64,000 bases of DNA from contig JAUPSS010000009.1 of the NCBI GenBank assembly GCA_040285825.1, positions 496,001-560,000 on the forward strand. Direction: 5' to 3'. Source of the stretch: Eukaryota sp. TZLM1-RC (taxonomy: Eukaryota; Protista; Metamonada: BaSk clade). Within the stretch, counting starts at the first letter, position 1. The number at the start of each line of letters is the position of its first letter. The notes under the pieces are model-generated. The model ran no database searches. It was not told where the DNA came from and saw nothing but the letters and a program-made list of their open reading frames with translations. The position numbers were made by a program, and so were the translations under genes. Of the stretch, positions 2,315 to 28,728 are shown one piece after another.

Positions 2315-3365
2315 ATGCCATCTTCTTCGTCCTCTAAGCGGATTGGATCATATGTCTTAGGTCCTAAACTTGGTGAGGGTACCTTTGGTTGTGTTCGAAA
2401 GGCCGTCCATCAACCTACAAATTCTAAAGTGGCCATCAAGTTCTTGGAGAAGTCCAAGATTGTTGATAAAGCTGATGTTAAAAGGATAACGCGAGAGATA
2501 CATATTCTACACTCTCTCAGCCATCCACATGTAGTACGATTACTTGAAGTTATTGACTCTACTAGCCATCTTTACTTAGTTACAGAATACTGCAGTGGCG
2601 GAGAACTGTTTGACTATATAGCAATTAAACGTCGTCTCGATGAAGCGGAGGCATGTAAATTGTTTCGTCAGTTAGTTGAGGGTGTGGACTACTGTCATCG
2701 CAAAAAGGTCTATCACCGAGACTTAAATTTGGAGTATGTTGCATTATTTCGGCACTAATCACATAAACGTCCTGGTGGATTCTGAGAGGAACATTAGGAT
2801 AATCAACTTTGGTCTATCCAACAGTATTAACACTATTAACGGTAATGAGATGCTTAAAACTGCTTGTGGATCACCTTGCTATGCTAGCCCTGAGATGATT
2901 GCCGGATCACGGCATCATGGGAAATCTATTGATATTTGGTCTTGTGGCATCATTCTCTTTAGTATGTTGTGTGGTTATCTTCCTTTTGAAAATCCTTCCA
3001 TTCCCAATTTGTATTCAAAGATTCTCTCTGGCACCTTCACAATTCCGTCATTTGTGTCATCTGAAGCCAGTGATCTTATTAGGAAACTCTTAACCGTGGA
3101 CCCTCAACGCCGTTGCACTATTGATGGAATTCGAAATCACCCTTGGCTTAACAAATTTAACCAAGTCTTTGTTCCTCAAGAAGACGATCCTGATGAAGTC
3201 TTGGATGAAGATATTCTGAGAGAATTAACCTCAATAGGTATAGACTCTGAACACGTCGTTTCTTCTCTTGAAAGCAAACAGTTCAACTCTGCAACTACTG
3301 CCTATATGCTCTTGAGTGCAAAGAAAAGAAAAGGGCAAAGTATATCGCTTTCCAAAGTAAAGTAG
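2315..3365 (+). pseudogene. SNF1/AMPK-alpha family Ser/Thr kinase with UBA-like tail; degenerate (pseudogene or pseudokinase); intron 2734-2764
   Basis: GEGTFG, VAIK, HRDLNLEN (K lost), NFG for DFG, LKTACGSPCYASPE; removing the 31-nt GTATGT...CTAATCACAT joins both ORFs in frame but the acceptor is AT; no C-terminal regulatory domain. Confidence 0.75.
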
Positions 3366-4559
3366 GTTTTAGTCTATGTATTAATTTTTTTATGTTTTGT
3401 ATATATGTTTAAATTTAGATGGTTCTGTGAACTGGTATTTTATTCAATTTGGATTGAGACAGAAATCATTACATTCAAACTTGCAGTTAGAAAAACAGTA
3501 GGTGATCTCACATTATATGGTAATATTATTTGGAGTGACTGGCAAAACAAAATTCAAATAAAATTACAACTCAAGTTCGGTTTAGTTTTTTGATGTTTTT
3601 GAATGCAATTCATGAATATACCAAACTGTTACAATGACATTCACATTCAAACTGTTGCAATGAAGTAAGCAGAGCGCGCTTTAGTCAAATGGGACATGTA
3701 CAAACATTGAGTCCAACTTTTTGGCATTTGGAGCATTTTGGAAAAATTTGGAGTTTGAAGAACAATTTGGTTGGGAAACTTTGAATGCAATAATGAAGTA
3801 GAATAAGGTGGCAAGGAGCAGTGGAAAGGGTACTAAAGACAGATGACAACACTTGCTTCTGTCTTTGAATTCCTTTGGAATCAGAGTTAGATTTAGATTT
3901 CACTAGTGCTGAGTATCGAGATCAGAGGTGGCTATGAGGAAGAAGTTTCAAAAATGAAAAAAAAAGGATTCTACTTTGCCAAATTTAACTCCATATTAAG
4001 TTCGATTGCCCTCGATGTCAGACCAACCGGTCGTGATGTTCTCAGTTTTGGACAGAGTAGAAAGTAGCAAAACAAGCAGTTGTTCAGGTCCCATCAAAAC
4101 AGAGAGGGAGAGGATAAGGGAGAATTATTCAGATAGCTGATTGGGAAGCGAACATGAGGTAAAAAGGAGAAGGAAACTACAAAAAAACATAGAGTTTAGA
4201 CGGAGTAACAACGACTAGAACAACTAGGCGGTATATCGAGCTGATGTTGATGACCAGTAATAGAGATATAGTGGATATGTATTTGATCCCATTGTGGAAA
4301 TTTGCATTCAAATTGAAATTGCTATAAGCATGTCAAACATCATGATAGACAGCGAGATTATCTTAACTCTTCCCATTCTTCTATCATCATGCAGCAAAAA
4401 AAGAAAAAGGATAACGAGGCTACAGACTCAGTTGCCACCTTCCCCACCAATCTGTTCAAAAAAACAACAACAAAAGAACAGCAGAATTCTTCTTCCCGAA
4501 CTCTTCAGTCGGAAACAGTCATCCTGCTTTACATGAATAAACGGATGGCCGGAGCCTCG

Positions 4560-4910
4560 ATTTCCTATCGGAATCGTCGTTCTGATCCTTCCATAGGAAG
4601 AGAGTATTGCACTTTTTTCAGTCATTATGTGAGTCATGATGTGGATGCTACTGAATTAGCCATGGTGACAATAACCTTGGATGTGGGATGTTGTTCTTGT
4701 TTGTATTTTGTTTTACATTGTTGTTACTTTGATGGTTTTCATTTTGTTGATTTATTTGGTTTGAGTACTTGTACTTTGAATATCAGATGCTTTTCCTGTT
4801 TATGTTTTGCTTTGAATTGTTGTCTTGAGTACTTTTACGATACCATTGTGGGTATCGCATCTCCTGCTGCCGATAAATGTGGAAATGCTGAAAAAAATAC
4901 TGAAGAAATG
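4560..4910 (+). repeat. Truncated copy of the hairpin / 2A-like element leader
   Basis: Clear nucleotide homology to the reverse complement of about 45460-45845; ends at GNAEKNTE, matching GNVEANPGP of the other copy. Confidence 0.7.
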
Positions 4911-7511
4911 TAATACTTATGTTGAAAGTTGTTAGTATAGTCTTGGGACCATTAGCATTTGAACACCAAAGAGTCGATAGTACGCAGGTAAAATCTATGA
5001 AGGGGGCTTGATCTCGTTTTTGTCTTTTTCTTTTTGTGCCGACTGTCGTTACTGTTTGTATTGCTGTTATTGTATCGAATTTACTTTTTTTTAATTCTGT
5101 AGCATTTACGCAGACAGTGATTCCGGAGCCTGACACAATGGAAGTCAAAATTGTTTTCACATTTTCAGCGATTTAAGAGAACTTGAAAATGCTCTTAATT
5201 GTTATGCCCCGTAAGTAAGTGCATTCCCGATAATGTACATGGAATACCAGCCAAAACGTTAGTTAATTTGAGGTGTTATGCGAAAAAGTTGCTACAAATA
5301 TTAGCAATGGTTTTTGATGGTCAGGATTTCAATGTTCGTCCAGGTTTAGCCAAAAAGATAATTCTCATTTCGCAAATTTTATAACTTGATTTGCAAATAT
5401 GGATAAATAATTTCTCCAAATCAATTGTTCAATTTTGAACCGTTTATTAATGTCCCAACAAACGTTCATGATGCAGTAAGTAATCAAATCCATTGTATGT
5501 CACAGTCACACAGAATTGTTTCCTTTTTAGTACCATTTCTTCTTGTGTGGTTGATAAAAATGCATTGATTTCATTTGGTCGACATAGAGGTACTTCAATG
5601 CTTGAATGTCTTGACGGGATGACTATCATTGCTGATATGAGATCAACTGATGTGTGTAATAATTCATTTACACCAAGACAAATTGACACCTGTGAAGCAA
5701 AATTGATATCCTTTATTGGCGTATCGCATACTCAATATATCCTTTGTCTACCCAATCATTTCATACATGGCTCGCGTTGACCACTTGCTTTATCTGTCTT
5801 GGATCATTGTGTCGAAATTGTAAAATAACCTTCAGTAAGAATTTTTGACAAACTGTATAGGCAGAACAGTATTGTATATTCAATTTTAAAAGGTGATGTA
5901 CTTTTGATATTTTCCGCTTTATTATTTCTAGGTTGTTTTTGCGAAGAAGAAAGCTCCAGCCAATTTTTCCTGACTGGGTTGGGATATAAAGATTGAGATT
6001 TTCAATATTTGTTGTTTAATTATTCGTTGGAATAAGTTAAATTCAGTCAAAAAATGTTTTCATATAAATAGATAAATAAAAATTCTGAATATAATGCAGC
6101 ACGTCTAAGCCATTGGGGGTTTGCCGTTCTAATACGCCCTTTGCAAAAGATCGAATTTAGAAATGTCAAAATGTTTTCCATATTTTTGAACAGTTTATAC
6201 AAAAGAGACTAACAGAAGTAAATGAATAATCCAAGCAAATGACTAAAATGATGAATTCTTTCTACAAGACATTAATCAGTGCTAATTGAACCCATATGTA
6301 ATCCGTAACAGGATTGTTGATCTTGCTGAACCACGAAACTTACCAAATTACGAAACTCTTTGGTAATCAGTACTATCAATTATGGAGTCTTCAAGAAATA
6401 ATTTTGATAGAAATTGTTCTAAAAAAGAAGCGTCTCGATAAGATTTCCACATAACAGTAAGGAAAATGATCAATTACAGCATTATGTAGAGTATTTCCAA
6501 ATATAAAGAATGTTCAAAGTGCAAAATATACGTGGATAGAAGAAATTTTCCATATTGAGAAATCAAATGATTAGTTATTTCATTTGGCCACAAAATCCAA
6601 CGGAAGTGTAATAGTTATTCATTATTCTGCTGAGGCAATATATTCATCTCGACAATTTGAGTCCTAATATGATTAAACATAAAGAAGTAGTTCTATAATT
6701 TTTTCATGGAAAATGTTTAACTGTTTCCTGTTGAAAAAATCAAAGAGTAAACAAAAAATTAACAATGCACAATCAGTTGAAATTGAATCTGCTGGTGAAA
6801 TTTTAAAGAAATTAAATTTATTATTTGTTTTACTATTACATGCAGACTGTGTTCCGTGCAATAGTTAATGGATTCTTGCTGGCATTCATGAGTGTTCTTG
6901 AATCATTTGAAAATAATTTCAAAAACCCGATGGAAATCATTAGTGTTTTTGGACACCTCGTTTAACGCACTTCTTTTTGAGGAATGGAAAAAAGTGATTT
7001 ATCAGAAACAAAATGAACCACAATGAATTCCCATACAATTCCGTATTGGGTGTCGCATTCGAATATGCATTTATTCCAAGAACAAATATTAATGATTAAG
7101 CTATAATTATGGAGATGTTTGGAGTGTTTTTCTTGGCATGGTTCAAAAAATATATTATCAAAGAACTGTATAGTTACGAGGGATTAGGAAGTACAGACTG
7201 TCCTGGTTGGGCAATTGGTTTCAGACATGGACAAACACAAGGATATTTCAAAGAGACTGTTAAATAAACAATTAAAAAAAGAAAAAATATGCACTGTAAT
7301 TTCATTTGATGAATTGTTCTTATGAATAATTTGACAAATTGAAGATCTTTCAAATAATTTTTGAAAGCAAAAATTATGGTTTTTGCCAGGCCAAGGCTTT
7401 CATTCATTTTAACAAGATGATGTTGCAGCTTTTTCAAGTAAAAAGGTACCAAAACTGAAAGAAGTTTCAACAGAAACAATTTATAGAAGGACAATAATAA
7501 AAAAATACCGG

Positions 7512-10500
7512 CTACTCATACTTTGGCTGATACAGATGGTCTCTACCTTCGAAAACATGCAGATACGAAGCTGGTATCTTTGATAGACAAACCCAGCCTT
7601 TCTTTAAGCGTCTTTTAAGTCTATATAGCTGATTGGGATTTTTTTCTAAATTATAGTAAAACACAAATTCTTGGTTCATTACATGGGAAATGACTGTTGA
7701 AAGGTCTGTGTTCCAAGAAGCATCAGGTTCTTTAAATGACAAATAATTAGTTCGGCACAGTTGGAGATTGGAAACATCTGCTTCTACAAAAGGAGGAGAC
7801 GCCCCTTCAATTTTTCGAGAAGCTCCAGGAGCAGTAAAGTCGACCTCCATGTCATAGTTTCCTACCTTGAATTTGAGCCGTTGACACAGAGCATTGACCT
7901 TATCAAAGCTAGTGATGTTGTATATAAGTTTGGAGTTCTGAAGACTCTTCAGAAATTTATCTGCAGTCGCTTTAACATCAGTCGTTGGGCATGTACAATC
8001 AATATCATTGGCAGTTTGGTTCCCGATTACCCAGTCTCGGACATAGCCACCATATATTTTGCAATCACATTCCCACAGCAAGATATGGCATAAATACTCT
8101 TGAAGACTTTCCCTACAGAGATTATCCAGTAGTGGTCTTTCGCCGGACAACAATCTACTTAATCTAGGATTCTGATTAACACAGTTGGCATTTTGATCTA
8201 CAGCAGAACAACCAGGCATCTTTACAATAACCAAATTTTCCTTCAATTTTCGATAAATTACGGCAGTCAAGATAGACACTAAATTTTGAAGACCAGCTGA
8301 GAGCCTCAAAACAAACTGATTGTTGACATCGTCATGAGCAAAATTAAAAGCGGCTGAGATCTCGACACGAGATACTGAAACTGCTTTCCGAATCATAACT
8401 TTAATATCAAGTCTTACAGAATTGATCAGAGTTGATTGAATTGTAAGTTGTGGATTCGTGATTGCAAAGTTACAAACAACATCTTCTCGTATGTTGTCAT
8501 CATCCAGCCTACGAATTTTACGAACTTTTTGAGACTCCATATTTACTTGGATGGCTTTAGCAAAGTTGATTTGGTACTTTTCTGGTCTCCCAGGGATAGA
8601 GAGATCTATAACTGAATGTCCAGATGATCCACAATAGTCTTTGTACGCATTTTCCAAGGTTTGACGTAGGTAAATATCGAAATTTTTCCACAAATCCCCT
8701 TCTTTGAACTGCCAAATCCCCTTTCCAGAAACATTAACTTTAACCGTCTTCCTTTGAATACGTCGCCGATAGCAAGTTTTAATATTCTTCTGTGTCATAC
8801 TTTCAAAACTGATTAAATAGTCTTGAGTCAAATCATCACGGAGACGAACAATATTAGAGGCAATGAAAGACTTTTTCGCTTCTTTTAAAACATAAAGTGA
8901 CCACTGTGATTCAATAAGTCTAGATAAATTCTCTGTGTAAGCCTTCCACTGCCCACCATCGTCCTGCCAATACCATCTCGCCACTAATTCAAGAGAATGG
9001 TCAGGGTCATAATCACTGACAGAATGCGATTCGAAATGAAAAGGGACCGGAACATTGATGGGTTTGAAAGTAATTTCTCCTTTGGGTATGTCTACCCTGT
9101 CCATTTCTAGAAATAGAAGAGGTAAACAATAGGAAGTTTTAAAGTCTATCGGATTATTCACAACATAACAATAATTGGTAACTTCCTTGAAAATACCACA
9201 AATAGGAAGAATAGCAGCAACAATCATGAATCGACAACCTTTAGCATAGCCCACGGAAATCTCAGGGTTTTCTGAAACTCCAAAATACTAGAATAAGTTG
9301 GAATAAATTACCACAAACCTCGCCAGGTCCATGAACTTGACCCGTTCTGTACCTGGGATCAAAACCATCATAAGCTATCGAACCAACAGATTTGTGTTTA
9401 GTTCCATGCCAAGCAAATTTGACACTTTCAAGACAAGATATTCCTTGCTTCAATACAACTTTGGAAAACCGCTGAATGGCTGGACAACCCAAAGCAAGAC
9501 TTGGATTCCTCATTTTGCGGATTAAGTCTGGTTTAATATTCCACAGCTTTTTGACAAATTCTTCAGCTTTTAAAAACAATTTCTCCAAATGATTATCACT
9601 GGTTTTCTTTAACAAGCCGTATTCGTGGCAAGAAATTCCAGAATGCAAATAATCATTCAAAGCTCCGCAGAAGTGACATTGTCCCAGACCACAAACTTCA
9701 CAGAAACAATATTCATCCATTTTACACATAAGAGATCTGCAATCAAAACTACGGCAAGCAGTGACAGAAGGAAACTTATTAGGAGAGGAAAGAACACACT
9801 GTGCTGTGATTTTGGATATAAGAGATAAGAAATCTTGTCGTTTGCTGAATGTTTTGCGAATGTCGGATAGTGAAACAACTTCATTGCATTTCGGACACTT
9901 AATTGATTGACTAACTGATTGATTGAACTCTAAATGACAGCTGGTCGTTGATTGAACATGATCTAGTAAGCACTGAGTGCAGTGTAGGTGACCACAATGG
10001 AAAAAACGACTGGAGCTGGGACCACGGCAGAAAACACAAAGTTGAGTGGCGAGGTTAGAATCTACTTGGTTGCTGTTGATGAATTCTCTAATGAATTGTT
10101 TCAAACATGTGATAGTGACTTCATTGCGCTTATGCCTTGGCACAAATAGTTCCAAGACGGATTTTAAATAATTAAACTTAATGCATTGTGAGAAATCAGT
10201 ATATCTTGAATTTTCAGTAATAAACATTTCAAATAGACTGAGTGTACCTTTTTTAGAGGAAAACAACGATTTTTGTTTTGGATTGAGTCCAACCAATTCA
10301 AACCTAGTAGCACATTCGGCACTATATTCATTCAGGGTTGACATGAAATGTCCTTGATTAACTTTGTGTCCAAAAATGGAAACCAGTATTTTAAACTTGA
10401 GCTGAGATACTTCAACTTTGACGTTTGCTTCAGACGACCATTTTTGAATAAGACCAGTATCTTTTGCTTCACGAATGAAGTACATTTGAAACACATCTTG

Positions 10501-13500
10501 GAAAGTTAACTTGAGAGGTTCTAAAATTGACAACAATGCCAAAGATGCCTTAAAATACTGCTGAGGACTTGAAGACTTGACTGAGATTTTTGTATTATTG
10601 GCCACTGCAGAAACCTCAACACCATAGAGATTCCCCAGATGCTGGGAAACAGTGGCTAGAGAGAAGATATTCAAATCAACGGGACGTTCATAGTTGAAAG
10701 ATACTTGTTCCTCCATGGCCCGAAGACGATCAAAGGCGGACGTGCAGACATCTTTATCAGAAAAAGAAAGCCGGTATAAGTGCATCTTCTTGAACTGCTT
10801 AATCAAAAAAACAGAACATTCTGGAACCACTACCTTGACCTGGAATTCTTTCAACTTCGTAAATAATGTAAACTGTGGTTGAATGCGAGAACGTTCTGCA
10901 GAAGTGGAAATCCTAACATCATTAAATTTTTGCAACTTCTCCATGGCTCTTTTGAACAAATCATTTGAGACTCCCGAAAATGTAACAAAACCACGCTGAA
11001 ATTGTCGTATTCCCTTTGCTAAATCTTCTCTGCTGGGAGGTGCAAGATTGAAAGATAGAGGAAATTTGCCAAAATTAGTGAGCTTGTTGAGCAATTCACC
11101 CCCAAGAGCTGAATTACACATTTCCATAAAATGCGCAATACTTTCTTGCTTTGGCCTAGTAATAACAACAGCTTGACAACCACCAATTACCTCATACAAT
11201 TGACAACCTTCACCCAACTGAACAGAATAATTGTTAAACTCTAACATGTTACAAGTTGAAGTTTTCTCGGCTTTAAGCTGATGTACAAATGCCTGACACT
11301 CATGTTTGAGCGTCAAGAACAAGGTTTCAGGAGCCGCAAGATGAATATTGTTATCAATGTAGAAAAGATCAACTAACCAATAAAAAGAATCTCTTGACGG
11401 TTTCCCTTTTGACAACATAATGTGCTTCATGCACTTTTGGAAATAGAATGCGCCAACATTTGGAATGATCAGTTCAGACTTGAGCTTGATTTGGTGGGTT
11501 TTGATGTATTTGCTGACAGATTGTGGAAGATCGGTTGTTGTAACAGGATGTAACCTATCCACAAAGGTCATAAAATCAGTATCAGTGATATTCAGAGCTA
11601 CACAGAATTCACTATTCTTAGTGTTCTGAGAAAAGACAGAGTTACGGTTGACAGATCCTTTGACTTGACTCTCAAGCAAGAATAAGAGTGGTCCCGAGCT
11701 GATTGGTGAATTAATAAATTGACAAATCATTTCAGGAAAGACCGAAATGAGAATTTTCCCAAGAATTTGAGAAAAAGTAGTAATGTTGTTGTTTGAGTCA
11801 GAAAAGGTCCCCAGTTTTTTGAAATCACGAATAATACCAAAAGATTGGGTGCAAACTCCTGCACAGATCTTATTGTTAAGAAAATTTCGTTTGGCATAAA
11901 CCTTGACGAGACGAAATTTCCGTCGATAGAATTCTTCATATTGAATAACCTCATCCAGCATCATTATCAAATCTGAGTCAAATTTCGATTGTAATAACTG
12001 TTGTCGTTGTTTTGCGTCCTCCTTTTCTTTCTCGGTTAAGTGAAATTGAAAATAAATCGTGCCAGGTGCTGCCAAAATAGCTGCAAGCTTGGCTCCAAGT
12101 TGAAGAAATCCTTGTTGGGCACATTGTAAAACAAGAAAGGATAAACGAACATCTAACTGTTGAGTAAAGAAAAACTTTCCCAGTTTAGTAACTTTTCCTG
12201 AATAATCGATACAGCCAAACTTTGAAAGTAATTCGACAGAATTATTCATAATCTTCAAGTCTGGTTTATCCAATAGGTCTACATCAAGAGGATTTTGATT
12301 GAGAGAAACTAACTTCAAAACCACAAAATCTAAGGAAGATCTCAATATTTCAGGTTCAATTGATTCACGTTCAAGGTCCTTTTCAAAGTTGAACAAGCGA
12401 ATACATTTACCTTGAGAAAGTCTTCCCGCTCTCCCTTTGCGTTGGTTGGCTGAAGACTTACTGATGTAGCATTCACGGAGAATGGTCATTCGCCTTATGG
12501 GACAATACCGAGCAACTTTCTCTAAACCTGTGTCAATGACGAGCTTGATCCCCGGAACCGTTAAGGAAGTTTCCGCGACATTGGTGCAAAAGCAAATCAT
12601 TCGAAGAGTTTCAGAAGTGTTTTCATTTTGATCAAACTCCAAAACTTCCCGTTGTTGATCTGCCATCAGTTTTCCGTGAAGAGGTTTAACAATGAATTGG
12701 TCAAAACCCTGCTCTTGACATAACAGTCTCGTTCTCGTCACACATTGCTCAATTTCCTTACTTCCAGAAACAAAGACTAACACATGGCCAGATGGAATAG
12801 AATCTTCATAGTTGAAACCAGAATTCATTTCATCAATGACAATTTCTGGTAAATCTTGAATTAAAGTTTGGGGCTCAGTGTTTTTTCTTCAACTTCTACC
12901 CTAAACAGACGACCTGGAACTCGGAGAGGAGTGTAGTGAGGAGCCGAAGATTTATAGAAGTATGTGAGAAAAACGAAAGGGTCAATTGTTGCAGAGGCGA
13001 TTATGACTTTAAAGTCGCTTCTTCTTGCACATACCAACTTTGCGATGGCCATTACTATATCGGTATCCAGGCTGCGCTCATGAGCCTCATCGATAATTAA
13101 AACATTTACATCGGTCAATAACATATTGCTTGAAGCTTTTCTAATCAAACACCCATCAGTCATTAAAACAATCTCTCTTCCAGTAATTTGTTTCCCCCCA
13201 ACCTCAAAACCAACATTTTCACCAGGATCTACTCCATCGTACTCGTGAGCAATACGGTCAGCTAAAGATAACGCGGCTATTGCTCTCGGTTGAGTACAAA
13301 CTACTTTGAAAGGACGGTTCCCCACCTTCTTTTTACAATATTCAGCTGCATATTGTGGCAACTGCGTGGTCTTTCCAGATCCCGTTTCAGCGATACAAAC
13401 AGTAACTTGTTGAGAATCAAGGCGTTCATGGAATTCAGAATAAGCAGCAAGGATTGGGAGTGAAGCAGTCTGACGGTCTTGAAAACGTTCTGCAAGTGAC

Positions 13501-14722
13501 TTGGTGTAGGAGAGTGGAGGCTGTGTTTGGTGGGAAGCATCTGCTTCAGTGAACGTTTTTTTCCAGGGACGTACCAAATAGTGTTTACCATTGAAGACAA
13601 TGGATCCTTGGGAAAGAAGATAGAGTGCATCGACTGAAGAATGAAAGCAGATTTCAGCTCGCACACAGTTCTGTTTGTGTTGAGCAACAAAGGAAGAGAC
13701 ACTGCACCCATTGAAAGCAAGATGTTGAATAAGAGGAAAAAGATCCTCAGTGTGCGATAATGGAAAAATTATCACTTTTCGACGAAGGAGGTCCCTACCA
13801 GGCTTGACTGACGTATTGATGCGTTTAATACCCTTTTCCAAATCTGCAGTGATGACTGAACTGTTTTCTGCAGCATCAACCAACAATTCTGCGTTCAGCG
13901 TAACATTGTACTTGTTCGCCAGCTTCTTCAAAAGGTTGAACTCAAGGATATAGTGAAAGGGGACCCAATTGTTATTCTCAGAGGCTTTGGTATACAAAAA
14001 ATCGCCTGAAGAACCTTCGTCATCTGGCTTGAAATAATTATCATCACCAAAATAATAGTCCAATTGAAAGCCGAAAGCTTCATTCATAGATATACCTTGA
14101 AAGCTATCAATCTGATTGACCAGAGGCATATCAATCACGTTAATTGAGTTGACAGTGACACCACCTTCAGTGAAGATGGAGGGATATAAGTTATTCACAA
14201 ATGGTTTCTGATTTGCGAGAAAGTACAGATAATAATGTCCGTGATAGATGTAAGTTTTTGCTACAAAATACTGGTTTTGTTCTTGCCAAACAAATTTGGA
14301 TGTTTTTGCCAGATCGAGTGGTTGGTTCTGAATGGATTTGGTTATGTGTACAAGAATTTCTGTGTCACGAGGGAATGTCTTATCCACGAAAAGGTAAAAG
14401 GCCTGCTTCGGACTGCCTGGAAGGTGAGAATGATTGGATAGTTTTAGTGGTTGATGGGAATCACATCCTCCTCTTCTACGAATTCTGCTTCTGAGGCTAA
14501 AACTTGCGATAATACATACTGTCTTTCGAAAGTTCTTTCTGCAGTTCCACATTGACTTCTATTAGTTCCGGGGGGACACCATCTTGGGTTACCTGAGGAT
14601 TTGTTTGGTGTGTCTCTGTGGATCGCCCTACCTCTCCCCCTGCCTCTAGCATTGCTGTGGTGAGTATTGTTGGTGTCAATCCTGTATGATTTCCTGTTAT
14701 AGCAATCTTCAGAATTGCCCAT
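7512..14722 (-). CDS. Giant multidomain protein (about 2380 aa): CBM48/Ig-like, RRM-like, DEAH RNA helicase + HA2, RING + IBR-like, PARP-type ADP-ribosyltransferase, 2x WWE, class II nucleotidyltransferase
   Basis: GSGKTTQLPQY, TQPR, DEAHERSLDTD, SAT, TNVAETSLT, QRKGRAGR; CVFC..CGHLHCTQC..CPKC; AWHGT..GFD..GPGEYFG..GYAKG (formed by the 31-nt intron 9288-9318); WYWQDDGGQWKAY and WQFKEGDLWKNF; GGYVRDW..NDID. Joins: probable GTATGT intron from 14519, one missing A in the A6 run near 12885, intron 9288-9318. Confidence 0.8.
9288..9318 (-). other. 31-nt spliceosomal intron inside the PARP domain
   Basis: GTTTGT...ACTTATTCTAG; removal gives HGPGE|YFGVSENPEISVGYAKG, fusing ORF 9262-12828 to ORF 7512-9254. 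Confidence 0.9.
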
Positions 14723-15734
14723 TGAACAATGAAAAAATTTGGGAAATTTTCTCAGTCCAGCTTAATCAAATCAAATGAATAAATTTTCCAGTGGTTTTCT
14801 CCTCTTATCATAAAATTTGTATCGCACCAATCATTCACCACTCCAAACATGCCATTCTTAAATGCCAATAAACCAGAGCATTTCCTCACATCCCTCAAAG
14901 TATACCTAACTTATACTTCTTCAAAGCAGGAAAAACTTATGTCAACTCTACCAAAATTTTCTTCTACGATTCAACACACATCATAGCACTGTTGTGATCC
15001 CCGTTGATTTGATCCAGTTCTTTTCCCCAATTGATGAGTCTTCGTCTACTTTCAAAGAAGAGAGACATTCCACTGCTGATTGTATCACCTGTATGTAGCG
15101 ACTCGAATGATCAAAATGGTTGCTGCTTGTGGCTGCTTTAGAAAGATCATTTGGTGTTCTGAGAATGGAGTTCCTTCGTGATTTAAACAGTTTTATTTAA
15201 CCATTTGTACAGTCTCCTAGAAAAACTAAATTAAGTGCTGTATCAACAGCTAATTTCAAAAAAAGAGTCATTTCAGTTCTCCCTGATACGTATTTATCTG
15301 TAGTATTTAGTTTAATTAGTTACTGCCTAATAAACATTAAAGTAAGCTTTATTTTTATCAACGAATTTTTGAAAAAGACAATGACGTTCACCGTTAATAT
15401 ATGGAGAAGCATGAAGTCTTTGAAACCAACAAAGTAAAGCAATTGATCTTTTGCTATGAATTTCTGTCCCTGAAAACATTGACCTCAGAACAATTTAAAA
15501 GTTTGAAACAACATTCAGTAAAGTATTCTTGTTTTTGTGTTTGCATTGCGAATTTTTCTTAAACAAATTTCGTCTAACGATAACACAACTTGTAGGTGTT
15601 GTAAAGCTTGGTGTAACGATTTGTTAAATTTTTTATTAATTAGTATTTATTCAACCGTCTTGAGACACGTATCAACTTGGTCTTTTAAAATTGTAAATGA
15701 AAACATTGAATTTCAACCAAATTTTCCTTCTTCA

Positions 15735-18700
15735 ATGGACCCGACTCTCAAAAGACAACTTCTTGACGATCTCAACATAGAAGAACAATATGTGTCGACT
15801 CTTGAAAAGGAAAAGGTGAAGTCTGTTGACGATCTCTGTGAGTTGATCTCCGAAGATTGTCTTCCTGACCAGAACCTTCGGGCTTTAGACAAAGCGCGTC
15901 TCAAAAAATTTGTGAGAACTCGTCGGTCATCATCCGCTGCCACTAAGGTAGAGTCTCACAATGGTCACAAAGGATTTACCCCCGAACGGAAAGTTCCAAA
16001 TACTTCAAGTCCAGTTTCTTCACCTACATCTCATCGAAACGCACCTAATGAAGATCATTCTGCTAACGCAACTCCCTCTCATTTCGTTCCACTCAACATG
16101 ACCGCAAATATTGTGACGACTACTAGTCGAGGTGAAATCAAGTCTGCTGGTGTTCTCCCTGTTCGTCAGTTTGGCTCTTCACTACAGCTCCTCCTTGGCT
16201 ATGAACACCCTAAACGGGGAATTAATTTCTTGGGTGGAAGTTTGGAAGCTCGTGAATCGCCTAAAGATGGTGGGATCCGAGAATTTATGGAAGAAACCGA
16301 CCTCCTCAAAATACCTCATTTATCGGCAACCTTGAAACGTACCAAAATGCTTGAGGTTCATCTTCCACATGGGAAGTACAACTTGTACATTCTCAACATC
16401 CATGATCTACCACATTGTTTTTCCAAATTACTTTCAAACCTTCCTCAACACTTCAAAGGTAGCAATGAGGTCTCGGAATTGTTTTGGGTTGATGTCAGTG
16501 ACTTCATTAATGGAACTAGATTTCACAATGTTCCGTTTTATGAATTGATCATCAAAAGCACAGCATATGTTTCCCCAGAGCTGTTCAAATTTCTACCCAC
16601 ATCAGAACCAAGCACTCGGTCCCAGAACTTTGTTAATGTCGATAGTATAGATGAGGACGAGGATACCACACCTCCTAATGAGAATGAATATCTCAACTTT
16701 GAGAAAGTCATGACAGATGAGGTGAAAAGGGCAAAAGAACTGCGATCCAAAAGAAGCTTACTATCGTTTTTGCTGCCGTCAAACTGGGGATTGAAAAAGT
16801 TCATGACTGATATTTGGAAGCTTGACCCTGGAGATTTGTCTCCAATAGTGAGTCTTGACAAGAATGACGCAGAGTACACTCGGCTAGCACAGACTTTACC
16901 ACCTGACATTGTTCAATCACTTGCTGCAATTCGAAAGGTAAATGTAGATAATCGAAAGAAGGCATTTGACAAACAGTTGAATGATAATCAAAACAAGCGT
17001 CCGCAACGACACATTGTCTTCCATGGAACACCAGATCCTTGGAGAGCCACCGCGATTGCATTGAATGGTTTTGACCTTTCCATCAAACTTGTTGGCCGAG
17101 CACTCGGTGACGGCGTCTATTCTACAGATAATGTAGCAACAGCAATGAGCTATTCAAAGGGGACAGGTTCAGTCATTCGCCTTGATTCCTTCATTAATCA
17201 GGACAAGTCGAATTTGACCAGTTTAAGTAGACCACCTGTTTATGTCTTCCCAAACAAAGACCATGTATTACCAATAACACTGTTTGATTTTGCAGTTGAT
17301 GCAAATGATCCAGGAAGAAAGCAGAGCGAACAAAAAAAGGACGCAGAAAAACGTTTCAAAACGATGCAAAAGGAAATGGCCAAAGAAGAAAAGAAACATG
17401 AAAAAGAAGTTGAAAGGCGCTTTCGAATAATGGTTACGGCATACCTCAACCGACTTTCCCACCTCAATGAAATTCATAAACAACACCTCGACAAAAGGCC
17501 TTTGATTTACAAATTGCTGGCTAGAGAAAAAAATTACTTTGATAGTAAACTTCCTCTGTACCACCACAAGTCAGATATTGTGGATTGTTTGAAGAAAAAC
17601 AACGTGATACTTGTACACTGTGATACTGGTTCGGGAAAATCAACTGGTCTGTGCCAATATATTGATGATTATTTTTCAGAGCTTTCTCTGACTGATGAAA
17701 AACTTGTCAATGACAAAAGAAAAATTGCAGTACTACAACCGCGTAGAGACAACGCCATTCAGCTGTCCCAGAAAGTGGCACGTGACAGAAACGTTGCTTG
17801 GGGCGATGAGGTTGGGTTCTCCATTGGTTTAGGAACATGTAAAACATCTGAAAACACAAGGATAGAATTCATGACGCATGGGAAATTTGAGCAAATTGCC
17901 TGCAATGCCAATAGAGTACTTGAAAAATTTAAAGTTGTTATTGTGGACGAAGCACATTTCAGAAGCATTCAGATTGATTTTGTTATCAGTTTGTTGAAAT
18001 TGGTTATAGTTGCTGCACATCAGAATCACGTTCTTGACTTTAAAGTCATAATCGCAACCGCAACATTTGAGCAATCTTTTTTTGAAAAATTAACAAGCTT
18101 CTTCTCCCCTGTCTCAACGATTGGTCACCTCAAATTTGAAATTCCTTCTTACCCTGTTCATATACAGTATTATGATCCTTTTGGGGAGGACTACGCTCAA
18201 GCATGCTCAAAGTTCAGTTTTGACTATTTTTCCAATGCAATTATCAACGCAGCTATTGAGATGACTGCCAAATTGCTGAACTGCACCGATTCGGGTGCGA
18301 TTTTGGTTTTCCTACCATCCAAAAGCTCCATAGACTGTGCCATCTCCGCATTTGCTTCCAAGTATGTCTCGGACCCAAACCAATCGTCAGGAATGGCAGG
18401 AAACTTGCAGAATAATCACTTGTCTATCACCATAAAAAAGGGAACAAATAGCTATAATGTTGGAATTTACGCTTTCCATGGACGTCTATCCAAAGCTGAA
18501 CGAAGTGGAGCCTTAGAATCACGACATGATCGTCGAGTCTATTTTAGTACTGATCTAGCTGAGACGGGACTTACAATTCCTGATGTTCGTTATGTTATTG
18601 ATTCAGGATTTTGTCAAACCGTTCGTTGGAATTCTCAAACCAATGTTGAGGAAATGAGCCGGGAACTCATTTCTCAGGCTTCTGCCACTCAACGCACAGG

Positions 18701-20973
18701 CAGAGCTGGAAGAACAAATTCTGGTATCTGTATTCGACTTTACCCCGAAAGTGTGTTCAAGCAGATGAATGATGCCTTAGTGCCAGAGGTAAAATCTGGT
18801 TATATTCTTAAATCAGTCTTGGCGTTTCTACATCATCAATCTTCTTCCAGTGATTTTGAACTTTTTGAGCCGTTCGACCAGCAAGACTTCGAACATTCTG
18901 TTGATTTATTAGAGAAAATAGCGGCCGTCAAACGCAATGGATCTTCATTAGAAGTAACCCAAATAGGACGACTTGTGTTACAGTTAGGAGTTTCATTTGA
19001 AAATGCATTATTCCTTATTAATGCCATTAACAATAAGTGTGTTGACTCTGCTGCGAAAATCTGTGCGTTAATGGTTGTTAATGGTGATACTTTGCTTTCA
19101 AATCTTTCTTCAAGTAGTCCTTTTATCCATAATCGTGGGGAACACTCAACATTGCTCAACATTTTCAATGAGTTTTTGAAGCAGCCGCATGACCAAAGAA
19201 GTCAGTGGTGTAAGAATCAGGGTTTAGATAGATATGTTTTGGAAGATGCCAATACTGCTTTCAATCATCTTACTGATACTTTGACGAAACAAAAAATTGA
19301 CTTTTCTGATCAAATTGATGAAGCTAAAGGAGATATCCATGATCACATTGTTAGAACTCTTTGTTGCACTTTTTTCAACAATCTCGGAGCATTTAAAGAA
19401 CCTGGCAATGTATCAAAAAAGTTTACCTTGTTTGAAGAAAATGATCTTGCTTCATTTGAATCAATAGATGTGGACAAGGATAATTCGACTACTTTATCCT
19501 TGGGGTCTACTTCGCGCAAACTTTGGACTGGAAGAGACTTGCCTGAAGATTACAATTTTATTGTATTCTCGTCGTTGATGTCAAATGTTACTCAAAATCC
19601 TGAGACTGGGGAAAAAACCTTTAGAAAATCACTTTCCTTTGTTTCATTTTGCACAACGCAAGATCTTAAAGATAGCAGTCCAAGCTGGAGAGTCAAAACT
19701 CTTGAGAATCAGCTTAACCGCTATAAGCGGACTAAATTTGAAGTTCCCATCAGCCGAGAGCAACGACGGTTACTTCTAAATAACAAAGGGGAACGATTGA
19801 GAGATTTGAGGCAGCAAATTAAGACCGCTGAAATCAATTTACCACAAAAGAATGATTCTCTCATTGTTTTCTGTCCAGAAAGCATTGAATCTCATATAAA
19901 ACGCCGAGTTGGAGAATTTTTGGAATCACACAAACCAGAAATTATTCGATTTGAAAACCTGGATGGCATCAACTTTGGAAAATTCTTGGGGAAAAACCGA
20001 TCTAATGCAAATGATCTTCAGCAAAAGCTGACTGATGTCTTGAAGTCAGTATCGCCAAATCCACATAATGTTAAATTAATTGTAGATTCTACCAAAAAAA
20101 AGCGTAGAAGTTATTGTACCTCCTGTTCCGTACCAGTTTGTTTCAGTAATACTTGGTCTCGTACAAACTAGTTTGAGCTCATGTAGTGATCAGAACATGA
20201 CTGCCGATCTGAGTAAAATTAGTTCATCTGGAAATTTTGGTGCTTTTCACAACAAAAATCCTCGCTTGGCAAAACTTGTGTCCTCCTTAGTCCCCAAGCC
20301 CACCACCAACAATAGGGATGATTGGGTTTTACTGGTCGCTCATTCTGCCATTTGGACTGCAGGGCTTGAACTTTATGGAGGATTTGTAAGAGACTATGTG
20401 TTGCGTAATGTTAGTGCCAATGATATTGATACACTAGTTCCTGACGGCATTAACATCAACGCAGCCTCTAATCTATTGTCCCAAGCGTTGGGCAAATACA
20501 AAATTGTGTGCCAGCCTATCACACAAAAAGGTAGAGCTCAATGCATGGCTGTTTCATTTCCAGGTGGTTCTGGTGTAGAAATTGACTTTACGCCAGCATC
20601 ACTGAAAGCAACCTCCCCTTTTGTTGATGCAGACATCAACAACTTCAAAGTCAACAAGAGTGGACTAGTTCAAAAAGTCAAAGGTGCGGGAGGGACTCTT
20701 TGTAATCTAGACATCGCCATTAATCATTGTTTGAATCAACAATTTGTATTTTTTTACCGTATACCATCAAATACCAACGCTGCTACAGATAAGGAACAGT
20801 TTGACATGTGCTTTAGGAGGTTGAGGAAAATGATGTCCAAAGGCTTCACATGCATTTCTCCATTAAACAGTAGGATTACCAATCAACTTTCTCAATACAA
20901 AGCACTAATCAAGCCAGATCCTAAATATGATGTACCTTTTCACAATCTTCCTCTACAGTTTCAATCAGCGTAA
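15735..20973 (+). CDS. Giant multidomain protein (about 1745 aa): SAM-like, Nudix hydrolase, PARP-type ADP-ribosyltransferase, DEAH RNA helicase + HA2, KH-like repeats, class II nucleotidyltransferase
   Basis: ATG 15735; Nudix box GSLEARESPKDGGIREFMEET; VFHGT..GFD..GDGVYST..SYSKG; GSGKST, QPRR, DEAH, TAT, STDLAETGLT, QRTGRAGR; GGFVRDY..NDID; deleting one A from the A8 run at 20094-20101 fuses the frame to ORF 20173-20973 with no stop. Confidence 0.82.
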
Positions 20974-21537
20974 TTTTTTAGTTGTATTCAAAGAATAAAT
21001 TATTTGTATTTAGTTAAAACAGTTGGACTGAATAGTCCATCATTGACAGAATTCAATATATTATCGCCACTATTGTTCTTTCAAAGTCTATTGATTGGAT
21101 GTACTGAATGCAATGTTCAGTGGGAATTAAGAAAAGATAGTGTAAAATGGGACTAGTTCAAGTGCTTTTAATCAAAGTGCAATGGTATCAGGTAACTAAA
21201 CTGAAACTAAAACCAAGAAATGTATGACAAATTATCATGATGATCATAAAAAATCCTGATTCAGTATTTGTGCACCGGTTCAATTCAATTCACAACTTTG
21301 GTAGTTAGTAAATAAAATGAAAAAATGATGTTCTAGTTCAGAACGTCAGAAAAGAGATGAAAAGCAAACTGTTGATGACGTCTTCGCTGAACTTGTTGGC
21401 TGTAAACGTAGGTATCCAGGAAGGAACGAATAGAAATCACCTGTGATATTGACTACGGAGCAACATGACCAACTCACTGTCGTAGAAGCTGAAGTATGTA
21501 GTTACCTGAACTCAGCTGTTGTTGATGTAAGAGATAC

Positions 21538-23945
21538 TTGAAACTCTGTTCTGTTTTCCAATCTGAAGTGTGTCCTTTTTGGATTGAAAATCCTATTACT
21601 TCAATTGAAGTTCTTAAAGCTATTCAAAAATTACCAAAGGGGAAAGCAGCAGGCCCATCTGGAATTTCTTTTGATCTGTTAAAAATAGCGTGTTCCAGTG
21701 CTCCCGAAATTGCTGATGATCTAGCCCATTATTTTCAACAATTAGTTGTTTTGAAAATTAATCCTCCTTTTGAATTACTTGCAGCACGTCTGATTGCTTT
21801 GGTAAAGCCTGGTAATGGAATTAAACCTGATGGAATACGCCCAATTGCCGTTGGTGAATCTCTATCTCGTTTGCTGGCATCAATTGTCTTCGATCGTGTC
21901 AAACACAAAGCTTCTACATTTTTGAATCCTCATCAATTTGGAATCAAAACAATTGATGGTGCTTCTGTTGCTGCTGTTGCCTCAGATACTTTTTTTAATG
22001 CAGAGGAAAATAATTATATTTTTAATCTTGACTTTAAAAATGCTTTTAATTCTGTAAAGCGAGAAGCAATTTTTGAAGTAATTAAATCTGATTTTCTTGA
22101 GCTATCGAGTTTTTTCTATCATTTTTATGGGAAAGAATCAGATTAAATTTATAATTCATTTGGTCTTAAATCATCTTCTGGTGTGAAGCAAGGTGATCCT
22201 TTAGGCCCATTATTGTTGTGTTTAGCTATTCACAAAACTTTAAATATCATTAATCAAAATACCCTTCTATAAAAATAGTTGCTTATATGGATGATATATC
22301 CTTGATTGGTTCATTTGATTTACTGGAATTGGTTGCTCAAGAAATTGCCGATTCATATGAAAATATTGGGCTTTATCATAATGCGAGCAAATGCCTTCTG
22401 ATTGGCTCTTCTGCTCAAGATCTTGTGATAAACGATTCTATTGTGCCTTTTACTAATTATAGTAGTGATGCTTTTAAGTTCCTTGGTTGTTGGTTAGGAA
22501 ATGTGCCTCAAATTCAGAATGAATTACATGTTATTTTGGAAAAAATGAAAATTGAACTTGATTCAATTTCTTCTTTAGATATAGAAAAACATATTAAATT
22601 TTTCATGCTTAAAATTTGCTACACTGGGAGAATAACCCACATTTTGAGATCTTGTGCTCCTTCCATAGCATTAGATTTTTGTCGTTCATTTAATTCATTG
22701 AGAACAGAATTTTTTGCTGATTTATTGGATGTAGAACCAGGAATGTTGAAAAGTCACTTATTTTCTTCAGCAAATTTGGGTAGTATTGGATTTACTAAAT
22801 TTTCAATTTTGTGTCAATCAGCATTCTTGGGTGGTGGCAAAAATTTTATTCATGAATTTTCTCGTAGATTTCCTGATGATTCTCATCTGTTAGTTCCCAT
22901 TTGCAGTCCCTATTTGTATGAGTTATCTTGTGAACTTGAAAAATTGCCGCCACAAATTTGGACCAAATGTTTTCCTCAATCAATTCAAGAAATTCCAAAC
23001 CGATCTCTTTTTAATTTACAGTTTTGCTGTAAAAAGCTTCAACAAAAATTGTCAATGATTTTTGAAAGCTTGGATTTTGATGTCAGACTTCGCTTGGCCA
23101 AGAAAAGGAATCCCGCTTTTGCAAATCTTTTACAAGATATGTGTGACGGTACTTCTTCTGCTTTAGTAACAACAATTCCCCAAGTTTATGGTACTCTCTT
23201 AACCGATTCTGCTTGGACTCTAAATATGAGATTTCTTTCCTTTATCTAGCCTGATAATTTACCTCATAATTTAATTTGTAAATGTTCTCGAGAAATTACA
23301 ACTACTCATTTGTCAACATTTTATTACTTTTAGAAGCAGAGTTCATGATGCTGTAAGAGACCAGTTATATTGTATGTGTAAATCTCATAGAATTGAATCC
23401 TTCTTGGAACCTCTGTTGTCAAGTCTGTGTGATGCTGAAGATGATTTTCATAAGAATAATAGAGGTGATGTTATATTACCTGGATTGGATGGAAGTTTCA
23501 TTTTATTGGATGTAATGTCTGTTGATCCTTGTAATGCCTCAAATGAAAGGCTAGTTAATTCTGAAATTCATAATCCCCTTTCAAATGCTGAAAATTTTAA
23601 ATTCAAAAAAATACAATGAACCTTTGTCCAAATTGGCCAGTCTACAGCATGCAAAATACAATTTGTATCCATTTGTATTTTCCCTTTGTGGTTCACCTGC
23701 ACCAAGTGCTTTACGTTTTTTGGATGATTTTGAAATGATTGTAAAGAGAAGAACTGGCAGAAATTTCAACAGATTGTTTTGGCAAAATAGAATTGTGTTT
23801 TCTATTTTAAAGGGGATGTTGAAGATGGTTTCTGATGCTTTGCTTTCTCTTGGATCTCACTATGAGAGAGTTGCATCTAGTGTATTTGTTCTGGGAGAAA
23901 TGGATTTTTTAGATGCTGATTTATAGGTTTTGAATAAAATTAAAA
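21538..23945 (+). mobile_element. 5'-truncated RLE non-LTR retrotransposon, local family D (RT + CCHC + RLE), degenerate
   Basis: KAAGPSG, RPIAVGE, DFKNAFNS, GVKQGDPLGPLL, AYMDD, RVHDAVRD, RGDV..DV, KKY; several stops and frameshifts. Confidence 0.9.
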
Positions 23946-27829: not shown

Positions 27830-27984
27830 TGTTAGCCTTGGATAATATTTATAATAGTTTATTTATAGTTTATTAATAGTATTTGTATTATTGCGCCCAT
27901 GCGCTTAAGCTTGAGGAAATCCTTATTTCCTTGTAATAAATTACTCTACATCTAGGTATAATGTCTAACCCCCGCAGATCATCA
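27830..27984 (+). repeat. 5' LTR
   Basis: tgttagccttgg...gatcatca; appears identical to 31775-31929; preceded by ATAT. Confidence 0.92.
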
Positions 27985-28566: not shown

Positions 28567-28728
28567 CCTTCCACTTCTTCTACGGAAGCTCCTGGGGAAG
28601 GACAACAAGTTCCTTCCACTTCTTCTACGGAAGCTCCTGGGGAAGGACAACAAGTTCCTTCTACTTCTTCTACGGAAGCTTTTGGGGAAGGACAACAAGC
28701 TCCTTCTATTCCTTCTTCGGAAGTTCCT
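28567..28728 (+). repeat. 45-bp tandem repeat (about 3.5 copies) in the gag-like ORF
   Basis: PSTSSTEAPGEGQQV repeated. Confidence 0.9.

Follow-up and report, generated by a model that had tools for sequence, protein, structure and literature searches.

Here we describe two divergently transcribed genes, A and B, in a 64,000-nucleotide stretch (the window) of the genome of the protist Skoliomonas litria TZLM1-RC (assembly GCA_040285825.1, contig JAUPSS010000009.1, positions 496,001 to 560,000 of the forward strand). Each combines a DEAH helicase, a PARP-like catalytic domain and a C-terminal nucleotidyltransferase (NTase) domain. Both are real multi-domain genes, each from its own family, and on balance we favour the reading that they serve ADP-ribose-coupled RNA tailing. 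Foreign or retroelement RNA is probably what the pathway surveys, and general RNA quality control is the less probable task. The isolate ‘Eukaryota sp. TZLM1-RC’ has been published as S. litria, a soda-lake metamonad that is anaerobic and free-living, and the 1478-amino-acid (aa) open reading frame (ORF) of the plus-strand gene is identical to a public protein. The locus is laid out as follows:

7512–14722, minus strand: gene A, full coding span; ~2,380 aa if read through, annotated as 610 + 1761 aa
12861–14722, minus strand: annotated 610-aa gene, part of gene A (public annotation)
7512–12828, minus strand: annotated 1761-aa gene, part of gene A (public annotation)
14723–15734, no strand: intergenic region between the divergent starts, 1012 bp; putative bidirectional promoter
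15735–20973, plus strand: gene B, full coding span; ~1,745 aa if read through, annotated as 1478 + 258 aa
15735–20171, plus strand: annotated 1478-aa gene, part of gene B (public annotation)
20197–20973, plus strand: annotated 258-aa gene, part of gene B (public annotation)

A first-pass annotation made from the DNA letters had placed the divergent starts at 14722 (gene A) and 15735 (gene B), about 1 kb apart, and both agree with the public annotation, which separates them by 1012 bp. From N- to C-terminus, gene A encodes a CBM48-like domain, a La motif, a DEAH helicase, RING1-IBR zinc fingers, a PARP domain with an H-Y-C triad, two WWE domains and the NTase. Gene B encodes a Nudix domain, a PARP domain with an H-Y-V triad, a DEAH helicase, a KH-like domain and the NTase. 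The domain positions bear out the earlier observation that the PARP follows the helicase in one gene and precedes it in the other. The two helicases are 27% identical, and genes A and B are therefore not recent duplicates. In Skoliomonas sp. RCL (TZLM3-RCL), the orthologues are uninterrupted (2476 aa for A and 1709 aa for B) and likewise lie head-to-head; gene A is collinear with its RCL counterpart at 43–51% identity (tblastn). Relatives carry the public names ‘hypothetical protein’, ‘RNA helicase’ or ‘Pre-mRNA splicing factor RNA helicase’. Each window gene contains one frame break, described below. We built no reading across either break and searched the pieces apart; the continuous or spliced sequences used in searches and alignments are the public products P0122 and P0263.

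The C-terminal domain shared by both genes occupies two segments:

7515–8222, minus strand: C-terminal class II-like NTase domain of gene A, recognized by profile, structure model and motif conservation
20212–20970, plus strand: C-terminal class II-like NTase domain of gene B; the C-termini of P0002 and P0003, which are in frame, share 45–50% identity with it

The two GGxVRD..NDID domains are 30% identical (E = 6e-29) and adopt the Pol-beta fold, in line with the nucleotidyltransferase proposed at first pass. A profile search over 1.84 billion representative proteins retrieved 310 at E ≤ 1e-3, including 81 at E ≤ 1e-30, with the domain nearly always C-terminal. Its signature (YGGFVRD, 12 residues, DID) fits the pattern hG[GS]-x9-13-Dh[DE]h. 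Across 50 diverse members, G56 is invariant, Y55, G57, R60, D61, D71, D73 and D125 are kept in at least 90%, and D141, N144, H172 and R203 are likewise invariant or nearly so. The third aspartate, D125 (‘VEIDF’ / ‘VDL’), lies on model strand E121–128 and is assigned to the active site from the motif. In the AlphaFold2 model of the domain (predicted local distance difference test score, pLDDT, 93.6), the top Foldseek matches are all RNA-specific nucleotidyltransferases (TENT5/FAM46, class II CCA-adding and A-adding enzymes, bacterial poly(A) polymerase, OAS1 and URT1). VIA aligns the domain best with the CCA-adding enzyme of T. maritima (3h3a_B; Z 11.1, root-mean-square deviation (rmsd) 3.8, 171 residues, head and neck). 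MenT3 and aminoglycoside NTases also appear among the structural matches. By sequence, the NTase profile found only CCA2 in the PDB, at a non-significant E = 0.46, and the assignment therefore needed structure. Against PF01743, the window NTases score 17–18 bits, below the gathering score of 23. Half of the diverse members (25 of 50) give sub-threshold matches to this PolyA_pol head family (best E 0.0031), 12 of the 50 match DUF5769 over the C-terminal half of the domain (best E = 3.8e-6), and no unrelated family recurs. The domain is an unannotated clade of Pol-beta NTases, closest to the heads of class II CCA-adding enzymes and poly(A) polymerases, and from its conserved motifs the head looks catalytically competent. 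A complex prediction for the two NTase domains scored 0.00, which bears neither way.

Compared with class II CCA-adding enzymes and PcnB (PF01743), the window domain shares the Pol-beta head and neck, the GGxVRD motif followed after 12 residues by DxD, and the third aspartate. It differs in its length of ~235 aa, in having neither body and tail, PolyA_pol_RNAbd nor HD domains, in its score under the Pfam cutoff, and in serving as the C-terminal module of ADP-ribose-related proteins. TENT5/FAM46, TUT4/7, URT1 and Cid1 are likewise structural matches and follow the logic proposed here, in which untemplated 3′ tailing leads to decay or stabilization, but they belong to another NTase subfamily. 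We know of no member of this set that is fused to a PARP, WWE or helicase domain.

The domain company of the NTase bears on its acceptor. Among 40 full-length proteins, its partners include WWE (19), helicase (13) and PARP (9), followed by Nudix, Macro, microbial-type poly(ADP-ribose) glycohydrolase (PARG), RRM, kinase and Ulp1 protease domains; minimal WWE-WWE-NTase proteins also exist, for example in Pharyngomonas. No Pfam match to PolyA_pol_RNAbd was found in the domain, and the body/tail RNA-binding domains are missing. It is rather unlikely, in our estimate, that the domain does something other than RNA tailing, such as acting on ADP-ribose or poly(ADP-ribose), on protein (NMPylation) or on a small molecule (a signalling nucleotide, as made by OAS and cGAS), or serving mainly as an ADP-ribose-regulated adaptor. 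Such a role would suit a domain whose commonest partner is WWE rather than an RNA-binding domain, which stands alone with two WWE domains in the minimal proteins, is also joined to PARG, kinase and Ulp1 protease, does without the CCA-enzyme RNA-binding parts and counts OAS1, MenT3 and aminoglycoside NTases among its structural matches. However, the best and fullest structural matches, together with GGxVRD..DxD, are those of class II tRNA NTases and poly(A) polymerases, enzymes that lengthen RNA at its 3′ end, and the NTases of the window genes accompany La, KH and helicase modules.

The catalytic PARP domains lie at:

9078–9576, minus strand: PARP catalytic domain of gene A, H-Y-C triad; family profile matches PARP10 (E = 2e-7); broken by a 31-nt intron
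16848–17309, plus strand: PARP catalytic domain of gene B, H-Y-V triad; profile matches PARP12 (E = 2.1e-10) over the whole domain

Both fall below the Pfam gathering score (22.3–24.1 bits vs a cutoff of 26.7, PF00644), but the profile matches to PARP12 and PARP10 uphold the PARP-like domain that the first-pass annotation had assigned to each gene. After PARP10, the PDB matches of the gene A profile are PARP12, PARP15, PARP14 and ZAP. The His (HGT) and Tyr (GxGxY) of the triad are invariant in both families. At the third position, the Val of gene B aligns with the triad Ile of PARP12, and the Cys of gene A (‘FCYVVNNP’), placed there from the motif, is kept in at least 90% of family members. 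Since the polymerising glutamate is missing, both PARPs are, as judged from their triads, of the mono-ADP-ribosyltransferase (mono-ART) type. In the PDB, their profiles match best to mono-ART PARPs with antiviral roles in vertebrates (PARP12, ZAP/PARP13, PARP14, PARP10 and PARP15), which share the loss of the polymerising Glu and the joining of WWE and RNA-binding modules to a PARP. Unlike these proteins, the window genes have no CCCH fingers, gene A carries its WWE domains after rather than before the PARP, the triads read H-Y-C or H-Y-V, and the PARPs are fused to DEAH helicase, RING1-IBR, Nudix and NTase domains.

The remaining domains of the two genes are:

14136–14405, minus strand: CBM48/AMPK-beta-like beta-sandwich of gene A; model pLDDT 70–85; Foldseek match 4yee (target-normalised TM-score 0.84, rmsd 2.5, E = 4e-4)
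13887–14078, minus strand: La motif of gene A; Pfam La 2e-6; sole PDB matches are human La (E = 5e-4)
13572–13784, minus strand: possible RRM (weak) after the La motif; beta-alpha-beta-beta-alpha-beta pattern, pLDDT <60, no Pfam match
12418–13415, minus strand: DEAH helicase core of gene A (DEAD + Helicase_C by Pfam); GSGKT and DEAH motifs
9628–10038, minus strand: RING1 and IBR zinc fingers of gene A; 16 invariant Cys/His; profile matches RNF31/HOIP RING1-IBR (E = 2.8e-7)
8505–8978, minus strand: two WWE domains of gene A (PF02825, 86 bits, 2.1e-24, two stretches, above cutoff)
16143–16523, plus strand: Nudix domain of gene B; GX5EX7REX2EE box intact; Pfam 28.3 bits vs a cutoff of 21.1
17577–18716, plus strand: DEAH helicase core of gene B (Pfam); GSGKS and DEAH motifs
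19737–19925, plus strand: KH-like domain (weak) of gene B; KH_SLS1_1 9e-4 and KH_1 0.019, both below cutoff

Both helicases, recognized by Pfam (DEAD/Helicase_C) as the first-pass annotation had held, contain a GSGK[TS] Walker A motif, a DEAH box and Helicase_C, and their nearest outgroups are HrpA, HrpB and DHX37. No HA2/OB match was found by Pfam in the window proteins; oomycete relatives have HA2_N, and P0143 gives a weak WHD_HA2 match. Upstream of the gene A helicase, the La motif scores 27.9 bits, below its Pfam cutoff of 37.1. It resembles the La module of La and LARP proteins in matching human La and in having a possible RRM next to it, and differs in its sub-cutoff score, the weakness of the RRM and its setting within a 2,400-aa multi-enzyme protein. 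The ~750 aa between Helicase_C and RING gave no Pfam match in any piece or orthologue, and residues 430–900 of P0122 (470 aa of the helicase–RING region), probed apart, gave neither Pfam matches nor Atlas leads.

Gene A shares with the RING-IBR-RING (RBR) ligase HOIP/RNF31 a RING1 and an IBR with all zinc ligands. It differs in having no RING2/Rcat: no RING2 with a catalytic cysteine was found between IBR and PARP (alignment A6), the second HOIP stretch scored negative, and a PARP follows the IBR instead. RING1-IBR is therefore not a canonical RBR ligase. Plant DEAH11 and DEAH12 are helicase-RBR proteins, and in gene A the RING1-IBR likewise lies C-terminal to a DEAH helicase. A combination of RING-type module, PARP and ADP-ribose readers (WWE) also recalls DTX3L-PARP9 and the Deltex ligases; in contrast to these, the gene A RING is of the RBR RING1 type, and no DTC (Deltex) domain was matched by Pfam in any gene A or B piece or orthologue.

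In gene B, the Nudix box GSLEARESPKDGGIREFMEE lies at residue 168 of P0001 with the catalytic Glu residues present (Pfam 28–30 bits vs a cutoff of 21.1). Its best subfamily match, RppH, is not significant (E = 0.048). The KH-like segment scores 19.7 bits for KH_SLS1_1 and 15.1 for KH_1 (cutoffs 24.1 and 21.5); oomycete relatives of gene B match KH_1 at 1e-4 to 1e-3 (19–22 bits). The helical N-terminus of gene B (60 aa) has no SAM match in Pfam, and a profile of four such N-termini finds no SAM in the PDB. The accessory domains listed at first pass fared unevenly: RING1-IBR, the two WWE domains and Nudix stand, SAM is without support, RRM and KH are weak, and the La motif and CBM48-like domain had gone unnoted.

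Four discontinuities interrupt the ORFs, two tiny introns in gene A and a single-base frame break in each gene:

14491–14519, minus strand: intron 1 of gene A, 29 nt, GTATGT...CAG, near the 5′ end; excision reproduces the annotated 610-aa product
9288–9318, minus strand: intron 2 of gene A, 31 nt, GTTTGT...CTAG, within the PARP G-x-G-x-YF motif
12881–12886, minus strand: frame break of gene A, an A6 run on the coding strand with a one-base shift; the orthologue is gapless here and without an A-run
20094–20101, plus strand: frame break of gene B, an A8 run, the longest homopolymer of the gene, with a one-base shift

The first-pass annotation was right that the ORF track hides two genes by splitting them into pieces, but with two introns and two frame breaks they are not simply continuous ORFs. 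Candidate first introns of gene A were tested for a match to the annotated 610-aa product. Excision of 9288–9318 restores GPGE directly followed by YFGVSENPEISVGY, a stretch that is unbroken in the TZLM3-RCL orthologue. The RCL genes contain 31-nt introns of the same type at other positions, one of them in the Nudix box of the B orthologue; the annotated 31-nt intron was excised from the RCL orthologue, before local tblastn, and from P0002. All Skoliomonas introns seen here (window 14491–14519 and 9288–9318; RCL contig L001 10466–10496) measure 29–31 nt, with a GT[AT]TGT 5′ end and a CTAAC/CCAAC-like branch motif, and are easily taken for frameshifts, and vice versa.

At both frame breaks, the RCL orthologues and the continuous S. 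litria paralogue P0003, a second copy elsewhere in the genome, align without gaps and without an A-run. The gapless orthologue alignment rules out introns at these sites, and the in-frame RCL orthologues and P0003 rule out conserved programmed slippage or frameshifting at the A-runs. Past the breaks, ~1,770 (A) and 266 (B) further codons are free of stops, and the post-break parts are 43–51% (A) and 50% (B) identical to the orthologues, a conservation at least equal to that of the upstream parts. The assembly was built from nanopore R9.4 reads (41x) and then corrected with Illumina reads (206x), and its genes were called with RNA-seq-trained GeneMark/AUGUSTUS. Homopolymer breaks are typical of R9.4 nanopore consensus errors. 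By our estimate, leftover nanopore homopolymer errors are probably the cause of the breaks, real recent frameshifts would be a less likely one, and some other cause seems improbable.

If the breaks are real, one or both genes could be recently inactivated pseudogenes or truncated alleles, leaving S. litria with a La-helicase fragment of 610 aa and an NTase-less protein of 1478 aa, or with no product. We consider this doubtful. The breaks do persist in the deposited assembly despite the Illumina polish, the public annotation gives the pieces as separate genes, P0003 could compensate for a lost copy, and the locus is rich in retroelements. The long stop- and indel-free downstream frames, conserved at least as well as the upstream parts, argue against decay, as do the homopolymers on which both breaks fall (the A8 run has no longer counterpart in gene B) and the GEM-RC1 orthologue, which is also split, elsewhere, in a nanopore-based annotation. 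That orthologue of gene B, from Skoliomonas sp. GEM-RC1 (L011 10001–15129), is annotated as P0004 (1030 aa) and P0125 (628 aa) with another split point, which fits a general frame-break problem in these nanopore-based assemblies. Illumina genomic reads and poly(A) RNA-seq of S. litria TZLM1-RC come from Williams et al. 2024 (PMC11316075).

The pairing of A- and B-type genes recurs beyond S. litria:

S. litria (window): genes A and B in head-to-head order
Skoliomonas sp. RCL: the same head-to-head pair, with a PARG-WWE-NTase gene immediately downstream
Skoliomonas sp. GEM-RC1: B, then a WWE-WWE-NTase gene in tandem
Metagenomic contig L009: B-family P0016 tail-to-tail with an A-family gene without NTase, 330 bp apart
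Metagenomic contig L010: a B-family and a WWE-WWE-NTase gene, arranged head-to-head; PARG 5.5 kb off

The proteins of L009 and L010 are only ~30% identical to those of Skoliomonas. On L009, the A-family gene without NTase (16871–22546, minus strand) neighbours a Macro-bearing B-family gene. On L010, the WWE-WWE-NTase and PARG genes (3885–5348 and 18706–19494, both minus strand) lie on either side of the B-family gene. In Pedospumella, consecutive gene numbers for the A and B families hint at the same arrangement, from the gene numbers only. Because adjacency of the pair, or of B with a WWE-NTase gene, recurs in RCL, GEM-RC1 and two unrelated metagenomic contigs, a functional link between A and B types gains support from gene order, and the recurrent neighbourhood suggests that the two protein types may act in one pathway. 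Immediate adjacency in three or more independent lineages far exceeds, by an informal estimate, what chance would give for single-copy genes, and is still unlikely for families with a handful of copies.

Shared-domain genes could nonetheless have become neighbours in Skoliomonas by local duplication and rearrangement, leaving the head-to-head layout without functional meaning. Such an origin agrees with the unlinked genes of several genomes, with the multi-copy nature of the families and with the intergenic region, which shows no sequence conservation with its RCL counterpart. We think it quite unlikely, given adjacency in three Skoliomonas genomes and on two contigs with ~30% identical proteins, in differing orientations (head-to-head, tandem and tail-to-tail), a PARG gene nearby in two cases, and the Pedospumella gene numbers hinting likewise. 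The functional pair proposed at first pass is in this respect partly sustained: its head-to-head layout recurs in RCL and adjacency in GEM-RC1 and the two contigs, but no linkage is seen within 10 kb in Aphanomyces, Lagenidium or Carpediemonas, or at P0003.

Downstream of the RCL pair, the PARG_cat_microb-WWE-NTase gene (P0126, 1134 aa) spans L001 15536–18968. About 4 kb past it, from 22858, lies a 2807-aa gene with a DNA_pol_A_exo1 3′-5′ exonuclease and a DEAD helicase, and the RCL locus may be an extended island of nucleic-acid enzymes.

Both families are widely distributed. A-family proteins (helicase, RING-IBR, PARP, WWE and NTase) were found in Aphanomyces, Lagenidium, Paulinella, Pedospumella, Carpediemonas, Chilomastix and Skoliomonas. 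B-family proteins were found in Skoliomonas, Phytophthora, Pythium, Kipferlia and Chlorochromonas, where an N-terminal Macro domain is frequent. As judged from these matches, both gene families are old and widespread, in metamonads, oomycetes, chrysophytes and Paulinella. One B-family protein from Pythium oligandrum (P0012, 2061 aa) ends in an inosine-uridine nucleoside hydrolase domain and is absent from the best 150 NTase-domain matches listed. It hints that the C-terminal slot might take alternative nucleotide- or ribose-processing effectors.

The window contains a third NTase gene:

58677–60068, plus strand: 463-aa ORF with a CBM48-like N-terminus and an NTase; truncated gene A paralogue

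Over long stretches, its NTase hardly differs from the gene A domain (~75% identity measured in the sister copy P0124). P0124 lies elsewhere on the same contig and is 88% identical to the 58677–60068 ORF; together, the two copies suggest recent duplication or gene conversion of a ‘mini’ gene A.

Viral relatives were also found. A giant-virus metagenome-assembled genome (IMG/VR GVMAG-M-3300024327-2) carries an 861-aa ORF (L007 4719–7304, plus strand) with an NTase-like domain (GGFIRDY..NDID, GPGVTSDVE), an insertion and a long low-complexity tail. Its homology to the NTase is detected by tblastn over one half (E = 4e-7) and by hhalign over the other (97.8% probability, E = 7.5e-13). By shape, the Atlas also offers mere leads in rotifers (PARP(+helicase) clusters, TM 0.68) and among Nucleocytoviricota (several clusters).

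This distribution can be read in two ways. A defence or anti-retroelement role, towards which we lean, would fit the patchy distribution, paralogue expansion with truncated forms, domain shuffling, viral homologues and retroelement-rich setting. Alternatively, both families may be housekeeping enzymes, that is, conserved protist RNA-processing or quality-control proteins (for example in structured-RNA turnover or stress-granule-type ADP-ribose regulation) with no part in defence, whose adjacency reflects shared regulation only. The age of both families across Metamonada, oomycetes, chrysophytes and Rhizaria, the conserved catalytic motifs, which indicate purifying selection, and the La, KH and DEAH/RHA modules, of a kind usual in core RNA metabolism, all speak for this alternative. 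Though a serious rival, it becomes somewhat unlikely in view of the patchiness of the distribution, with no animal, fungal or plant names among the matches listed, the several paralogues and truncated derivatives per genome, the shuffling of the domains with PARG, Macro, kinase and Ulp1, the homologues in giant viruses, and the closest PARP relatives, which are the vertebrate antiviral mono-ART clade (PARP10, 12, 14, 15 and ZAP).

In the ADP-ribose-coupled tailing reading that we favour, the helicase and the La or KH modules would engage RNA, with the La motif suggesting 3′ ends, and the mono-ART PARP would mark a protein or a phosphorylated RNA end with ADP-ribose. Human PARP10, PARP11 and PARP15 can modify RNA ends in vitro. 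The WWE domains could read this mark and recruit, position or activate the NTase, which would add untemplated nucleotides to the RNA 3′ end. Nudix, acting in cis, and PARG or Macro, encoded in neighbouring genes or relatives, might remove or process ADP-ribose. RING1-IBR may bring in a charged E2, and, speculatively, the adjacent PARP with its conserved Cys might join in the ubiquitin step in place of the missing RING2. A wider version is tentative at best: the genes would form the core of an ancient eukaryotic immune-type neighbourhood shared or exchanged with giant viruses, in which WWE reads ADP-ribosylated foreign or retroelement RNA, or proteins bound to it, and switches on the NTase, which tails the RNA or extends the ADP-ribose. 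RING1-IBR-PARP, with its near-invariant Cys at the catalytic-Glu position, would then couple ubiquitin to ADP-ribose, and Nudix, Macro and PARG would reset the system.

Several observations weigh against the tailing and surveillance reading. The Pfam scores of the PARP, La, KH and NTase head (PolyA_pol) domains all lie under the curated cutoffs. The NTase ends ~235 aa after its start, at the protein C-terminus, short of the CCA-enzyme body and tail domains, and RING1-IBR comes without RING2. The 10 kb around the genes of Aphanomyces, Carpediemonas, Lagenidium and L008, and around S. litria P0003, hold no partner, and wide conservation also fits a housekeeping role. Concerning the gene models themselves, Illumina polish at 206x should have mended most homopolymer errors, and 17 other A/T runs of at least 6 bases in genes A and B are in frame, so that the breaks may be real. 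Three public DNA contig sets, of low coverage and from one sample, miss 12881–12886 and 9288–9318 and speak neither for nor against.

The first-pass annotation had flagged the system as possibly undescribed, and we found no description of helicase + PARP + NTase, of WWE + NTase or of this NTase clade in the searchable literature; an earlier mention in ADP-ribosylation reviews is possible. What is new here is the NTase clade, along with the conserved gene neighbourhood; multi-domain mono-ART PARPs and terminal NTases are known kinds. The clade comprises the 310 representative proteins, is partly catalogued as DUF5769 and is fused mostly to writers, readers and erasers of ADP-ribose, and two ancient protist architectures unite it with a DEAH helicase and a PARP on one polypeptide. 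Recurrent clustering of such genes in distant eukaryotes is unusual for eukaryotic genomes. RNA ADP-ribosylation is an area of active, open questions, as is what antiviral mono-ART PARPs do, and to our knowledge no effector directly downstream of an ADP-ribose mark on RNA has been established. Together, these findings yield a testable hypothesis, in which ADP-ribose signalling and untemplated nucleotide addition would be mechanistically coupled, and the locus offers compact domains suited to expression and assay. In practice, users should note that both genes are split in the public annotation, which makes the architecture invisible in protein databases for S. litria.

The gene A/B locus lies within retroelement-rich DNA, and the S. 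litria genome is reported to be 55% repetitive. A Ty3/gypsy-type long-terminal-repeat retrotransposon pol region (27961–31455, plus strand) contains RT_RNaseH, Integrase_H2C2 and rve, is split over three ORFs and has a GC content of 44–47% compared with ~35% in its surroundings. Reverse-transcriptase fragments lie directly 3′ of gene B (21538–22146, plus strand) and farther on (32869–34248, minus strand). At the other end of the window, an ORF at 2736–3365 (plus strand) encodes only the C-lobe of a protein kinase (Pkinase positions 128–263), and the missing N-lobe must be encoded upstream of it, in a different frame or exon.

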